A stretch of 64,000 nt of DNA, from sequence record MK568540.2; one strand, 5' to 3'. A program made the translations under genes and the position numbers. This document shows positions 11,474 to 55,231 of the stretch, piece by piece. Under the pieces are notes generated by a model that was not told where the DNA came from, did not search any database, and saw nothing but the letters and a program-made list of their open reading frames with translations. Every line of letters starts with the position of its first letter. Position 1 is the first letter of the stretch.

Positions 11474-12325
11474 TTAATAACCGAGCAGTCGTCGCGTACC
11501 GCTTGACAATTCTGAGTCACTCTGCATTTCTAATTTCTCAATGCTTGGCCAAATGGTGAGTTCCATGTCATTAATAACCCACACCTTACCATTGATGATT
11601 GCGATCTTCTGCTCATCGTCAAACCATTGTTCGCCTTCTTCATCGTGATACCACTCTAAGTCGTAGAATGCATCATACCAAGCATCTGACATGCGAATCG
11701 GTCCCGATGTCAATGTAACCTTACCGTCTTTTACAGTAAGTCGATTGAAGTCATTCAGTAGCCAACTACCATCACCTTCAGTTACTTTGACAATGGCTGC
11801 GTCGTTAACTTCTCGTAAGTCTAGTATTTCAGTACCCCATGCAGTGTCATATCCCGTCGGCTCGTCTGTATTCACTGCAATTGGTTTAATGCGTGTCATC
11901 ACGAAAGAATCACCGTAAATAGTCAATCTGAACCCCAGTTCCTTACTGAATCGCAGTGCCATACGTTTGTATAACTCAAAACGCTTATCAGCATCTGACT
12001 CGTCAGCGTCATCAAACGCGCTAAACTTAATGCGATTTACTGCATTATCGTTCATAAAACGCTTGATTTCTGCAATCACCGTCGCAAAAACCATCATAGC
12101 TTTTTTAGGATCACCTTTTGCCAGGTTGTAATCGAAAGTTGTCGCACCCGCTGCCTTGTGCATGAAATCCACACCTAGGTCTTTTTTAGATTCGTCATAA
12201 TACAGACCAATCATATACTCAGCGCCGTCTATTTCAAAGTAACTCTGATTACCACGTCGTGCTGTTATAGTTGCAGCGCGGTTAAACGCTTCTGTTAGTT
12301 CGTTTTGATATTCGCTAAATTTCAT
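11474..12325 (-). CDS. Predicted internal head protein, paralog family member 1
   Basis: Leader MKFSEYQNELTE; shared domain VFATVI...IKFSAFDDADESDADKRFELYKRM. Confidence 0.6.
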   Translation of the reverse strand: MKFSEYQNELTEAFNRAATITARRGNQSYFEIDGAEYMIGLYYDESKKDLGVDFMHKAAGATTFDYNLAKGDPKKAMMVFATVIAEIKRFMNDNAVNRIKFSAFDDADESDADKRFELYKRMALRFSKELGFRLTIYGDSFVMTRIKPIAVNTDEPTGYDTAWGTEILDLREVNDAAIVKVTEGDGSWLLNDFNRLTVKDGKVTLTSGPIRMSDAWYDAFYDLEWYHDEEGEQWFDDEQKIAIINGKVWVINDMELTIWPSIEKLEMQSDSELSSGTRRLLGY

Positions 12326-12326
12326 T

Positions 12327-13247
12327 TTAAGATTCCATTATTTCTGGGTTTAACCACGGCGCGTCGAATGCATTCACGTATTTGGTAAACGCCGCATCGT
12401 CGGTGTATATTTTTAGACTTGTTTGACTAGTCAAGACGATATAGAAGTTTTTGAATGCCCCAACCAGATATGTTCTATCTTCTTCGGGACCCTCGCCATA
12501 GTCGAAAATTGGGTGCTGTAGTGCTGCTAACCAACCTTCCCTGTCAGACATTTCATACACAACGCGATTTACACGTAACCTAGCTGCAATTTCGTCAGCC
12601 GCTTTTACAACTGCACGACCTTGCCCTAGAACACCACTAATCATCGAACCATCTTCAACTTCAAACGCTCTTACAAATGCATATGCATTGGCGTGAGATA
12701 AATTAACTTCAACATGGTCGCTATGTTCTTCAAACCCGACTGGACGACGTGCTCGACGTGAAAAGTCATCTACACGTTGTTGATAACCCACATCATACAC
12801 AATGAATTCACGACCTACGTTTCTGTAATCATACTGAGGGAATTCTCTAAGTTTCGCCTTTGTCATGATCTTATACAGTCTGAGACGTTTATCTGCATCA
12901 CGCTGATCAGCGTCATTGAACGCGCTATATGTTATTTGAGCAGGTGAATTGTCTCTAACAAAACTGAAAATAGCATCGACAACCGTTGATAATACGATAC
13001 GAGCTGTTTTATCATCTTTCTTAGTTAGATTATAACCACTACCATCAAGAGCTTTGAACGACACCTCAGCCTTCATAGACTTCATCCCGTTCGGTTCACG
13101 TATAATACCTTTCTGAATGTCTATTTCATAATAAACACCATCAACTTGAAACGCATACACGTTTAAATTTGGTAACTCTCGGACGAGTTTATATTTCGCA
13201 GGGCGATCTAACGACTCGTTGAGTCTTTGATATTCGCTAAATTTCAC
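12327..13247 (-). CDS. Predicted internal head protein, paralog family member 2 (GTG start)
   Basis: Leader MKFSEYQRLNE; VLSTVV...ITYSAFNDADQRDADKRLRLYKIM. Confidence 0.6.
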   Translation of the reverse strand: MKFSEYQRLNESLDRPAKYKLVRELPNLNVYAFQVDGVYYEIDIQKGIIREPNGMKSMKAEVSFKALDGSGYNLTKKDDKTARIVLSTVVDAIFSFVRDNSPAQITYSAFNDADQRDADKRLRLYKIMTKAKLREFPQYDYRNVGREFIVYDVGYQQRVDDFSRRARRPVGFEEHSDHVEVNLSHANAYAFVRAFEVEDGSMISGVLGQGRAVVKAADEIAARLRVNRVVYEMSDREGWLAALQHPIFDYGEGPEEDRTYLVGAFKNFYIVLTSQTSLKIYTDDAAFTKYVNAFDAPWLNPEIMES

Positions 13248-53107: not shown

Positions 53108-53832
53108 ATGTCGAAAATCCTAAGCCCATATTCTGGGTTTTCTGAGCCGTATGCACGTGGGTTACACAGTACATTACAGCCATTTACGTGATAGTCAAAT
53201 TCTTGATGAACATGACCGTGAATTGCAAAACTGAACCCTTCAAGTAAATGGTCAAGGTCAGTGCAATAAAAACTATTCGTACTTGAATACGCATAGTAAG
53301 ATGAAATGCTCTTCAGAGAAGGGGCGTGATGTGTGATTAACACTTTCTTACCTTCAATCTCGCGACATTTCTCAATAAATTTGACTGATTTACAATGAAG
53401 TGCATGTACATCTTCACCGTACAAAGGTCGCCATTGCGGACCGCGAATCTTACGACGGTCATTCATATTGTCTTTCCAACGTTGACCCTCAAACCAGTCA
53501 TTGACTTCGTGCCACAGCGTAGTTCCGCAGAATGTCACGTCGTCAATCTGAACTGTATTTTCAAGCAAGACGTGAACATTGTCAACCGAAGTTTCAAATT
53601 TATGTCGCTCGTGAATCGCGAGACCCCACCAATCGTGATTTCCCGGCACTGCGATAACAGCGCGCCAACGGTCGGCTACAGCTTCTAAATCGCGCACTGT
53701 GCGCCCTTTGCTGTTAATGTCACCCGCTACTACCAATACAGCGTCTTTGTCGCCTGTAATCGATTCTAGCGCGTTCTCTGCGTGATAGTCGTTGTGAATA
53801 TCACTACAGTAATAAACTTTTAAATTTGCCAT
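53104..53832 (-). CDS. Calcineurin-like metallophosphoesterase
   Basis: SDIH, AGDI, GNHD, THH, HGHVH. Confidence 0.9.
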   Translation of the reverse strand: MANLKVYYCSDIHNDYHAENALESITGDKDAVLVVAGDINSKGRTVRDLEAVADRWRAVIAVPGNHDWWGLAIHERHKFETSVDNVHVLLENTVQIDDVTFCGTTLWHEVNDWFEGQRWKDNMNDRRKIRGPQWRPLYGEDVHALHCKSVKFIEKCREIEGKKVLITHHAPSLKSISSYYAYSSTNSFYCTDLDHLLEGFSFAIHGHVHQEFDYHVNGCNVLCNPRAYGSENPEYGLRIFDI

Positions 53833-55231
53833 CGAATCTCCAAAATATTATCGACATAAAATGCGTTGTAGTTGTGTAAACGCAGATATTCAATCAATAG
53901 GCGTTTCATACTATGACTTTCAATACCTGGCAATTCGTCTTGCATTCTGATATTAATACCAAAGCGCATTTCATCAGTTGCTTGCGCAATGCGCTCATCT
54001 AGATGTTCTAGATCATCAACGGGAAACTTCTCTTCCATTACTTTGATGCTGCGTGCGCGTGCTTCTTCTGCTTTCATAATCATGCTCATGACTTTCGTCT
54101 CCAATCAATTATAGTCAATATCATGCGTTCAGAACCGTGTTCCATCAACATACGATTCACATAAGCAAGTGCTAAACTGTGAGTCTCGTATTGCAAGTAG
54201 CCAATTTCGGACGGCTCGTAAGGGTTGATTCGATTTTTAATATCGAATGTATTCTTCACTGCTCTGATATTATAACCTAATTTCTCGAACTCTGCAACCG
54301 CTGATTCATAAAATTCAGCTTTTATACCGACTTTTATCTCAAGCTCTGTATCAGCTATTTTATCAATTGATTTCAAAGTGTTATACAGAAAATCTTGAAA
54401 TTCTTCGATTTTCTTTAACTGACGGTCGGACGGTTGCTTCGGCTTATAGCGTGACCGCATACTAGCAGCATCAAACATAATATTTTCTCTCAGAAGTAGT
54501 CAGCGTACCTATCTAAGATTCGCTTCGGGATTTTTAAGTTTACAAATCTCTTACCTTTCAAACCACCATCATATGCGATTTCTGCAATCAGATCTTCGTA
54601 CATGTCTGGTTCAAGTTCGTCGATAATGTCCTTGTACTCTTGTGGAAGCTGTCTCTTCAGCTTCTTAACGAGCGCGTGAATCTCATTTATCGTGAGATCA
54701 CGCAACTCTTGGTATGTCATTTCGTTTAGGGATATTTCAATAAAAGACTTTAGCATAATGCCACCTCCGTCTCTTATTTAATCCCTAGTAGCTTACCAAT
54801 TACGGTCATTGGTAGATAAAAAATGACATAAAACAAAATGTAAATCGCAATCTGTACGCCGAAACCTAGTGATAGCATAGCGACGTAAAGCTGCACGAGG
54901 TAATAATCTACCTCGGCTGTCGCTGCTTCGTTCAGTTCGCCGCGAAACTCGCGACACATATCTTCTAGAATTCGAATGAAATTGCTCATTACCACATCAC
55001 CTCAAGTTTCTCACCTGTAATGAACGCATCATAGCCGAGACTAATCAAAATACTACGAATAGTATCGCGCTCACTTTCAGTCAATTTTTCTGTTTTGAAG
55101 TCAACTCGCGACTTCGTGGGAGAAGCGACTTGAATTGCAAAATCTAGCTCTTCAAGTGACTTCTCAACAGCAGGCGAAAGTTTCTTCCGCTTTGCTCTTG
55201 CCTCTTTTGCTGTAATCATTGGGTCATCCAA
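53820..55231 (-). other. Hypothetical CDSs: 53820-54104, 54086-54478, 54490-54756 (leader MLKSFIEISLNE; late-like ATTAAATA at 54775-54782), 54774-54995, 54989-55231
   Basis: ORF track. Confidence 0.6.

Follow-up and report, generated by a model that had tools for sequence, protein, structure and literature searches.

Ten proteins of Vibrio phage Va3 carry N-terminal leaders resembling the capsid-targeting sequences of T4 internal proteins

Ten proteins encoded in the first 64,000 nucleotides of Vibrio phage Va3 (MK568540.2, nt 1-64000; the window), a KVP40-like relative of T4, begin with short leaders that resemble T4 head-loading tags, so most of the ten probably belong, as yet unannotated, to that known system and not to a new one. 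We put the probability that the majority of these genes code for head-internal proteins of a T4-type prohead core at about 0.7. The first-pass annotation had proposed a portable capsid-targeting leader on varied proteins, and for most of the ten our comparisons support such propeptides, each ending in a predicted prohead-protease site. The evidence is strongest for Va3_053, Va3_068, Va3_069, Va3_037 and Va3_075 (Alt), good for the paralogs Va3_020, Va3_021 and Va3_076, and weaker for Va3_032 and Va3_088, the latter being the least supported candidate. All ten genes are labeled hypothetical in the Va3, KVP40, nt-1, 6E35.1a and 1.081.O records, with the exceptions of Alt in most records and a single label in 1.081.O. 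At least six more candidates lie in Va3 beyond the window. Our literature search found no virion proteome or N-terminal data for KVP40-like phages.

Table 1. Leader-bearing genes and late-promoter-like octamers in the Va3 window
Feature	Coordinates	Strand	Description
Va3_020	11474..12325	-	283 aa, family A; predicted 12-aa leader at 12290-12325, L-T-E then A-F-N-R
Va3_021	12327..13247	-	306 aa, GTG start; tandem paralog of Va3_020; predicted 11-aa leader at 13215-13247
Va3_032	17906..18961	+	351 aa, opposite strand to neighbors; M-I-I-F-E leader at 17906-17920
Va3_037	21012..22463	-	483 aa, acidic, HEAT/armadillo-like (suggestive); 15-aa leader at 22419-22463
Va3_053	31710..32147	-	145 aa; 10-aa leader at 32118-32147; payload domain also occurs in polyvalent proteins
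Va3_068	41172..41819	-	215 aa, basic; 10-aa T4-type leader at 41790-41819
Va3_069	41827..43272	-	481 aa; 11-aa leader at 43240-43272, T4-type motif shifted by one residue
Va3_075	46761..48389	+	Alt-like ADP-ribosyltransferase, 542 aa; 9-aa leader at 46761-46787
Va3_076	48422..49303	-	293 aa, family A; 12-aa leader at 49268-49303
Va3_088	54490..54756	-	88 aa; leader at 54721-54756; GGAGG-type ribosome-binding site just 5'
Octamer CCTAAATA	17866..17873	+	late-promoter-like, 32 nt before Va3_032 start codon
Octamer TCTAAATA	22492..22499	-	late-promoter-like, 5' of Va3_037; kept in 6E35.1a
Octamer AATAAATA	32556..32563	-	upstream of regA (32147-32527)
Canonical TATAAATA	44759..44766	-	upstream of gp24 (43803-44702); heads gp24, gp55, Va3_069, Va3_068 block
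Octamer CATAAATA	46722..46729	+	late-promoter-like, upstream of alt
Canonical TATAAATA	49328..49335	-	upstream of Va3_076; kept in 6E35.1a and nt-1
Octamer ATTAAATA	54775..54782	-	late-promoter-like, upstream of Va3_088

Every one of the ten N-termini translates as first quoted, with start codons backed by annotation, and each has a candidate propeptide of about 5 to 20 residues at its extreme N terminus with [L/I]-x-E at the leader end. The h-x-E ending stressed at first is present throughout but is not distinctive, as [LI]-x-E ending by residue 16 occurs at 86 of approximately 375 Va3 N-termini versus 63 expected, including those of DNA polymerase, gp44, and thymidylate synthase. In contrast to this bare ending, the motif [FY]-x-x-F-[IL]-x-E, derived from the T4 internal-protein genes (NC_000866.4), was found at 4 Va3 N-termini versus 0.05 expected (about 80-fold enrichment; Poisson P ~3e-7) and only once in 66,479 internal positions. 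Three of the four, Va3_053, Va3_068 and Va3_069, lie in the window, and a relaxed form of the motif gave 6 N-terminal matches against 0.36 expected. When leaders were compared with the nine post-Met residues of ipII/ipIII, six were matched by Va3_053 and by Va3_203 outside the window, a level reached by none of 63,854 internal Va3 10-mers, and four were matched by Va3_037 and Va3_068; the expected numbers of N-termini are 0.02 at five or more matches and 0.47 at four or more. Likeness to the IPIII/IPII leader is partial for Va3_020 and Va3_021 and was not found for Va3_032, Va3_075, Va3_076 or Va3_088.

Family alignments revealed fixed P3 and P1 positions with variable P2 residues and leader lengths, and leaders with cleavage-type sites are retained in relatives down to 37 to 49% identity. 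By strict alignment alone, [LI]-x-E was kept in 6E35.1a for 7 of 9 candidates versus 11 of 16 other genes, which does not clearly separate the two groups. In the Va3_069 family, F5 and L9 are invariant down to 37% identity and E11 is present in 10 of 11 members, the 1.081.O relative carrying Ala at this predicted cleavage position; residues 1 to 23 have low confidence in the AlphaFold model. Seven full-length members of the Va3_037 family, one with an insertion, keep the leader pattern and [LI]-x-E before [IV]-[ST]-D-R, and the Va3 leader contains two candidate sites, Y-Q-E at residue 10 and L-D-E at residue 15. The Va3_068 gene starts at the ATG at 41819 and not at the upstream TTG of the mechanically called reading frame, and in 6E35.1a its leader is more diverged than the mature part. 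Va3_032 shares its first 10 residues with its counterpart in phage 1.081.O, the two proteins being 47% identical overall. For Va3_088, the first seven residues are conserved, followed by a linker of variable length and [LF]-x-E before M-T-Y-Q, with Phe at P3 in 6E35.1a.

The ten had been described as mostly unrelated, which needs amending for Va3_020, Va3_021 and Va3_076, as these are paralogs (phrog_6387; family A). In the family A alignment, E12 is invariant and P3 is Leu in every long-leader member, and 10 of the 12 leader residues of Va3_020 recur in its 6E35.1a ortholog, a protein 49% identical overall. The Va3_076 leader has candidate sites at residue 5 (I-F-E) and at residue 12 (L-I-E, then A-F-D-R-P), and in two relatives lacking a 7-residue insert M-I-I-F-E runs straight into A-F-S-R-P. 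Residues 1 to 13 of Va3_076 were modeled by AlphaFold as low confidence or disordered. Foldseek matches of the ~150-residue N-domain of family A to predicted viral structures (E=5e-4 to 1.3e-2) include Alt-like ADP-ribosyltransferases (ARTs) as well as multidomain proteins that contain a zeta-toxin or deaminase domain.

Among the payloads first proposed (ART, methyltransferase, peptidase and HEAT scaffold), the ART assignment held. By its domain matches, Va3_075 is an Alt-like ART (PF03496, 24.2 bits versus a cut-off of 23.4; phrog_802, E=1.2e-88 over residues 276-541), and its leader keeps an aromatic residue at 4, L at 7 and E at 9 at 45% overall identity, while P2 varies. We detected no methyltransferase or peptidase in any of the ten with Pfam, NCBIfam, PHROGs or PADLOC, nor through a solved-structure sequence search for three families or Foldseek against PDB for two models. 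A HEAT/armadillo repeat fold for Va3_037 is suggestive: its PF02985 match is below the curated threshold (20.4 vs 23.5 bits), two homologs have precomputed Pfam matches, and the 1.081.O homolog is labeled "armadillo-like helical protein." T4 Alt is packaged, processed and ejected (PMC9026906, PMC5512222). The Va3 gene lies close to the one for DNA ligase, as T4 alt does; it also carries a late-type box and encodes a short leader ending in [IL]-x-E; the protein is only remotely related, however, at 542 versus 682 aa with a leader of different sequence and length, and no coliphage was among the 57 tblastn matches listed at E<=1e-5 against phage records.

The payload of Va3_053, a gene missing from KVP40 and 6E35.1a, matches no Pfam model but has 2,753 representative relatives at E<=1e-3 (1,447 at E<=1e-10), in which the domain is embedded at varied positions, many of them within proteins as long as 5,042 aa. 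Of ten relatives scanned, four add GNAT, Arr-ms, SprT-like, or (below threshold) ART-PolyVal or ParB_N domains, and actinophage records place the domain in genes labeled "ParB C-terminal domain" or "ParB-like nuclease domain protein." The domain thus falls within the repertoire of the polyvalent proteins, for which entry together with the DNA has been predicted (Iyer et al. 2017, PMC5512222), but in Va3 it stands alone behind a T4-type leader instead of in a multidomain fusion. Stand-alone homologs from other sources have short leaders of their own, with h-x-E just before the start of the conserved domain. One of these, from an uncultured marine T4-like phage, is encoded in the late module, flanked by gp15 and gp2, and beside it is a 673-aa protein whose leader is of the same type.

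Late-promoter-like sequences also mark half of the candidates. TAAATA boxes occur at all six positions first reported, as NNTAAATA octamers at 17866, 22492, 32556, 46722, 49328 and 54775, the one at 32556 lying upstream of regA. TAAATA is present 12 to 50 nt 5' of the start codon in 5 of 10 candidates versus 4 of the 97 remaining genes in the window (Fisher P=2.5e-4). The boxes of the candidates are conserved in 6E35.1a and nt-1; that at 17866 is also kept in KVP40 and reads TCTAAATA in 1.081.O. The other five candidates have no late box of their own, and three of these could be reached from boxes farther upstream. Va3_053 directly follows regA with a 1-nt overlap, and the 32556 octamer could serve it if the two are co-transcribed. 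Similarly, gp24, gp55, Va3_069 and Va3_068 are tightly packed and would be transcribed as a block from TATAAATA, and we found no strong minus-strand terminator within the block.

Va3 encodes the machinery that such leaders would require, with gp21 matching Peptidase_S77 (PF03420, E=1.9e-98), gp22 matching T4_CASP (PF25623, E=4.6e-71), and PHROG matches resembling gp67 and gp68. Its core and head proteins bear the same type of site as the candidate leaders: M-K-F-x-S-E opens gp68, L-L-E occurs at residue 9 of gp22 and L-I-E at residue 8 of gp21, and in the gp23 propeptide L-I-E precedes A-F-N, comparable to L-T-E/A-F-N and L-I-E/A-F-D in family A. As gp24 of the KVP40-like group lacks Glu in its first 24 residues, processing rules may differ from those of T4.

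By analogy with T4, we infer core binding, cleavage, virion residence, ejection and any anti-defense or takeover role as follows. The first 5 to 15 residues would act as a capsid-targeting propeptide that ties the nascent protein to the gp22/gp67/gp68 scaffolding core as the core forms on the portal. Once the gp23 shell is closed, the Peptidase_S77 prohead protease (the gp21 homolog) would cleave after the Glu of [L/I]-x-E at the leader end, and the mature protein would stay free within the head. At infection, at least Alt, and probably variable members such as Va3_053 and family A, would exit with the DNA.

Several of the leaders share with the capsid-targeting sequences of T4 IPI, IPII and IPIII a short N-terminal position, aromatics three apart and then [IL]-x-E on otherwise unrelated proteins. 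As in T4, Va3 encodes a Peptidase_S77 protease and gp22-type scaffold, some members vary among close relatives, and one candidate outside the window lies in the tRNA region, as ipI does. Unlike the T4 proteins, which are small and basic, the in-window Va3 mature proteins are mostly acidic, at 9 to 59 kDa. They lack sequence similarity to the T4 proteins past the leader, their genes are scattered over early-gene regions with several well conserved genus-wide, a second leader type (M-I-I-F-E) has no internal-protein counterpart among the T4 genes examined, and their packaging and processing are predicted. Many head proteins of the giant phages phiKZ, 201phi2-1 and SPN3US are likewise cut after Glu in a three-residue motif, with redundant sites in propeptides, as in Va3_076 and Va3_037, and paralogs with identical N-termini and diverged bodies, as in Va3_020 and Va3_021 (PMC5694885). 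Those phages differ in their S80 protease, in their A/S/G-x-E motif and in propeptides that are for the most part far longer, and we found no homology between their head or ejection proteins and the Va3 proteins. Reviews of T4-like phages already describe diverse internal proteins with only the capsid-targeting sequence in common, perhaps a general route for packing varied proteins into the head (PMC3012670, PMC9026906). The principle is therefore published, and the suggestion of an undescribed system does not stand.

Several points count against the head-loading reading: the non-specific [LI]-x-E, the five candidates without a late box, the acidity and size of the proteins, the Ala in the 1.081.O relative of Va3_069, the Phe at P3 of Va3_088, the leader divergence of Va3_068, and gp24 without an early Glu. 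A possible alternative is that the proteins go to the prohead and undergo processing but that several are conserved assembly, core or internal-structure parts of the long KVP40-type head and not ejected effectors. This would apply especially to Va3_068, Va3_069 and Va3_088, which are 70 to 80% identical between Va3 and 6E35.1a (62nd to 79th percentile; window median 64.5%), and perhaps to Va3_032 and Va3_037, which are at the median. None of the five yielded an enzymatic domain in our searches, Va3_069 and Va3_068 share their block with gp24 and gp55 in Va3, nt-1, KVP40 and 6E35.1a, and T4 core proteins gp67 and gp68 carry such sites as well (PMC9026906). The conservation of Va3_068, Va3_069 and Va3_088 is as compatible with conserved proteins of the head interior or of assembly as with arms-race effectors, and the "first-strike anti-defense cocktail" of the first-pass annotation found no direct support. 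Against a purely structural role, Alt, family A and Va3_053 show 45 to 49% identity or presence/absence variation between close relatives, and the Va3_053 payload comes from a repertoire predicted to be delivered with DNA (PMC5512222).

We consider it unlikely that the resemblance arose from chance, common N-terminal composition and paralogy among ordinary, never-packaged cytoplasmic proteins of the early or middle phase. Such an origin would suit the commonness of h-x-E, the paralogy of three of the ten, the location of the genes amid replication and nucleotide-metabolism genes, and their mostly hypothetical labels, but not the N-terminal enrichment of the T4-derived motif, leaders that persist at low overall identity, P3 and P1 being fixed and P2 free, their association with late boxes, or the independently placed leaders of unrelated stand-alone Va3_053 homologs. 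Very unlikely, in our view, is that the conserved element behind M-K-F-S-E-Y-Q in Va3_020 and Va3_021 is the nucleotide sequence, acting, for example, as a signal for translation or a junction for recombination or gene conversion, with peptide likeness a by-product. Bases 2 to 22 (12304-12324 and 13226-13246) are indeed identical, as first reported, in both genes and their single 6E35.1a counterpart, synonymous sites included, at 26 to 49% protein identity and ~56% DNA identity between the two Va3 genes overall; conserved leader regions have been proposed as shuffling points at the T4 IP locus (Repoila 1994, as cited in PMC4122927). The M-I-I-F-E leaders of family A, however, vary at synonymous sites while the peptide is constant, and the A-F-x-R cleavage-type junction is conserved at the protein level throughout the family. 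For Va3_020 and Va3_021, the nucleotide and peptide-leader explanations are mutually compatible.

More speculatively, and with considerable doubt, KVP40-like heads may take at least 16 leader-tagged proteins, part of them an "unbundled" polyvalent arsenal in which single conflict domains have their own T4-type tags in place of one giant fusion, and the ~150-residue N-domain of family A may be a head-internal or ejection module in common with the non-catalytic part of Alt-like enzymes. If virion data confirm the head-loading reading, some 10 to 16 hypothetical genes would be relabeled as head-internal in vibriophages of marine and aquaculture settings, a widespread group. The T4 targeting rule would then extend over a deep family branch and to proteins as large as ~59 kDa, providing a simple N-terminal signature for spotting delivered proteins in T4-like genomes and metagenomes, and the pairing of a T4-type leader with a polyvalent-protein domain would join two delivery strategies hitherto described apart.

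The window is identical (100%) to nucleotides 1-64000 of MK568540.2, the genome of Vibrio phage Va3, a Schizotequatrovirus and thus a KVP40-like relative of T4. The window holds 107 complete annotated genes in the Va3 record, which labels nine of the ten candidate leader-bearing genes, which we name by first coordinate, as "hypothetical protein"; the tenth (46761-48389, here Alt) is labeled "RNA polymerase-ADP-ribosyltransferase." The candidates are also hypothetical in the records of the related phages KVP40, nt-1, and 6E35.1a, in KVP40 even Alt. As a background set for counts, we also read the remaining Va3 genome (L003 to L006). 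Elsewhere in the window, we observed a 7-deazaguanine/queuosine-type cluster at 4810-9568 (queC, queF, a tgt-like gene, folE, and queD) and, at 63020-63223, a 67-aa protein (Va3_105) with a type IV pilin signal-like N terminus, whose 6E35.1a ortholog is labeled PilE-like.

Translation confirmed all ten N termini quoted by the first-pass annotation, which had stressed that most of the leaders end in h-x-E (hydrophobic residue, any residue, Glu). This ending proved to be common, as [LI]-x-E occurred by residue 16 in 86 of approximately 375 Va3 N termini versus 63 expected from its internal frequency, including those of DNA polymerase, gp44, and thymidylate synthase. As a yardstick independent of Va3, we took the leaders of T4 ipI, ipII, and ipIII from NC_000866.4 (accession given in PMC10468400) and derived the motif [FY]-x-x-F-[IL]-x-E from the ipII/ipIII leader; the T4 Alt leader came from a fetched record as well. 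Four Va3 N termini (31710, 41172, 41827, and Va3_203 outside the window) contain this motif versus 0.05 expected, with a single match at 66,479 internal positions. Six of the nine post-Met residues of the T4 leader are common to 31710 and to Va3_203, a level reached by none of 63,854 internal Va3 10-mers. Overall, the leader observation was confirmed in part: the T4-type core, late promoter-type boxes, and a 21-nt identity described below stood, and the bare h-x-E ending did not.

Several leaders are conserved in relatives. An alignment of family A, comprising the paralogs 11474 (Va3_020), 12327 (Va3_021), and 48422 with their relatives (12 sequences, 26-94% identical to 48422), showed an invariant Met and predicted cleavage Glu (P1), a free P2 position, and A-F-x-R next, with Leu at P3 in all members with a long leader. 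Because two members without the 7-residue insert pass from M-I-I-F-E directly to A-F-S-R-P, these five residues, which also form the leader of 17906, are plausible as a minimal leader. Residues 1-10 of 17906 are identical in Vibrio phage 1.081.O at 47% overall identity. In the 41827 family, F5 and L9 are invariant down to 37% identity and E11 is present in 10 of 11 sequences, Ala replacing the predicted cleavage Glu in the 1.081.O homolog (alignment member P0018). The 21012 family conserves an M-K-x-F-x-x-F-Y-x-E start and [LI]-x-E before [IV]-[ST]-D-R, even with a length-changing insertion; Alt, at 45% overall identity, conserves L7, E9, and an aromatic residue in position 4; and 54490 conserves its first seven residues, followed by a variable-length linker and [LF]-x-E before M-T-Y-Q. 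A blunter test, retention of [LI]-x-E in 6E35.1a, did not clearly separate the candidates from other genes, and the leader argument therefore rests on these deeper alignments. AlphaFold confidence was low at the N termini of 48422 (residues 1-13) and 41827 (residues 1-23).

The reported match between 12304-12324 and 13226-13246 is exact over 21 nt, in two genes (11474 and 12327) that are approximately 56% identical in DNA overall. Bases 2-22 do not differ at any site, synonymous or otherwise, among Va3_020, Va3_021, and their single 6E35.1a counterpart (window 12304-12325 and 13226-13247; L009:32177-32198), and the three proteins are 26-49% identical. The 6E35.1a gene has an upstream flank like that of Va3_021 and a body like that of Va3_020. 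This pattern points to either a constraint on the nucleotide sequence or a junction left by recombination. As 11474, 12327, and 48422 are paralogs, both in phrog_6387 and by alignment, the description of the ten ORFs as mostly unrelated was too strong for these three.

All six NNTAAATA octamers attributed to the candidates were found in place, but the one at 32556 precedes regA and not 31710 itself. With TAAATA, the late-box core quoted in the first-pass annotation, a box lies 12-50 nt upstream of the start of 5 of 10 candidates versus 4 of 97 other window genes (P=2.5e-4). Checking this core against Va3's own late genes, we observed the same octamer type upstream of gp23, gp22, sheath, tube, and baseplate genes. 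The packed block gp24, gp55, 41827, and 41172 begins with gp24, upstream of which lies a canonical TATAAATA, and our scan detected no strong terminator between the genes of this block. We also noted Va3_083 (52633-52878; 81 aa), absent from the original list, in which residues 8-10 are L-L-E and ATTAAATA lies 33 nt upstream; its conservation test was uninformative because its entire N terminus is conserved.

Further candidates lie outside the window (see table). Va3_148, Va3_149, Va3_203, Va3_207, and Va3_210 are mostly basic, with late boxes in all except Va3_149, whose C-terminal half is part of the family A N-domain; Va3_203 shares its setting with T4 ipI. Va3_229 has a probable longer start yielding a leader that ends in L-V-T-E, and its sub-threshold match to the PARP catalytic domain (22.4 versus 26.7 bits) suggests that it may be a second leader-bearing ADP-ribosyltransferase (ART). 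We dropped Va3_040 due to a hydrophobic stretch suggesting a membrane protein, Va3_089 and Va3_033 due to loss of the motif in 6E35.1a, and Va3_370, which is without a late box.

Leader-bearing candidates outside the window
Feature	Va3 genome position	Position in record read	Properties
Va3_148	93053-93646	within L003:29053-30569 (with Va3_149)	basic; late box
Va3_149	93649-94569	within L003:29053-30569 (with Va3_148)	M-S-I-I-F-E start; no late box
Va3_203	148272-148514	L004:34272-34514	in tRNA cluster; late box
Va3_207	152381-152587	L004:38381-38587	late box
Va3_210	153157-153528	L004:39157-39528	late box
Va3_229	172214-173302	L005:8214-9302	362 aa; late box
673-aa protein, uncultured marine T4-like contig		L012:6198-8219	T4-type leader; late module, among neck, gp15, and gp2 genes
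31710-payload homolog, same contig		L012:10001-10597	T4-type leader; late module, among neck, gp15, and gp2 genes

Va3 encodes the matching prohead machinery, with gp21 a Peptidase_S77 protein (E=2e-98) and gp22 a member of the T4 scaffold family, and similar N termini and sites are found in its own core proteins gp68, gp22, and gp21. The gp23 propeptide contains L-I-E followed by A-F-N, resembling the predicted junctions of 11474 (L-T-E / A-F-N) and 48422 (L-I-E / A-F-D). The predicted cleavage Glu is residue 12 in 11474, 11 in 12327 and 41827, 10 in 31710 and 41172, 9 in 46761, and either 5 or 12 in 48422. A separate observation concerns the head vertex protein gp24 (43803-44702): Glu is absent from residues 1-24 of this protein in Va3, nt-1, and 6E35.1a; in T4, a short propeptide is removed from gp24. 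The KVP40 record states that its gp24 "may contain an internal deletion."

Our best explanation is that the leaders serve as capsid-targeting propeptides of the T4 type for proteins inside the head, and we put the probability of packaging and processing for most of the ten at roughly 0.7. The first-pass annotation had gone further and predicted a co-injected effector arsenal. Compared with the median window identity of 64.5% between Va3 and 6E35.1a, Alt, 11474, and 48422 fall in the lower quartile and 17906 and 21012 at the median; 41172, 41827, and 54490 are 70-80% identical, and neither 12327 nor 31710 has a true counterpart. Due to this spread, the candidate set is mixed, some members behaving as variable internal proteins and others as conserved head components. 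An anti-defence role is considerably less probable than packaging. From the proposed payloads, an ART stood (the Alt-like 46761), a HEAT scaffold was seen in 21012 only as a sub-threshold HEAT/armadillo-like match, and neither a methyltransferase nor a peptidase was found among the ten. Searches of Pfam, NCBIfam, and PADLOC for payload functions returned only Alt and sub-threshold HEAT, DUF6934, and PARP matches. Separately, 6E35.1a orthologs of 45162-45989 and 46098-46601 are labeled SprT-like metallopeptidase and Alc; both lack a leader, and the SprT-like gene is outside the ten candidates.

Sequence searches of solved structures gave no match for family A, 41827, or 21012, and AlphaFold models of 48422 (pLDDT 83) and 41827 (pLDDT 73) matched no fold in the PDB (best E=0.03). 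Foldseek against predicted viral structures (BFVD) indicated that the approximately 150-residue family A N-domain recurs in many phage proteins, among them multidomain proteins and several labeled Alt-like ARTs. Because hhalign profile comparisons of family A with Va3 Alt and T4 Alt were negative, this modeled likeness is a lead only. Among loci related to Alt, IMG/VR yielded only one near-identical contig.

The payload of 31710 is the most informative. Its residues ~10-143 match 2,753 representative proteins, mostly internally in large proteins of up to 5,042 aa, and 4 of 10 relatives scanned also contain GNAT, Arr/ART, SprT-like, or ParB_N domains. This architecture is that of "polyvalent proteins," whose entry into cells together with phage or plasmid DNA has been predicted (PMC5512222). 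The leader of 31710 ends where homology starts. Stand-alone homologs from other sources carry short leaders of their own that end in h-x-E directly before the conserved domain; one of these homologs is encoded between gp15 and gp2, within the late module of an uncultured marine T4-like phage (L012). The gene is absent from KVP40 and 6E35.1a, and elsewhere in cultured phages the domain occurs mainly in actinophage genes labeled ParB C-terminal or ParB-like nuclease domain proteins.

The proposal of an undescribed system did not hold. T-even internal proteins are diverse, with only the capsid-targeting sequence in common, and this sequence has been suggested as a route for loading varied proteins in T4-like phages (PMC3012670, PMC9026906). 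Giant phages have redundant sites and identical N termini on diverged paralogs (PMC5694885), and the principle is therefore known. In the literature searched, which excluded the T4 genome review and the description of the KVP40 genome (Miller 2003), no work linked such leaders to KVP40-like phages. We found no earlier description of these particular proteins, which are probably new members of the T4-type leader-bearing proteins.
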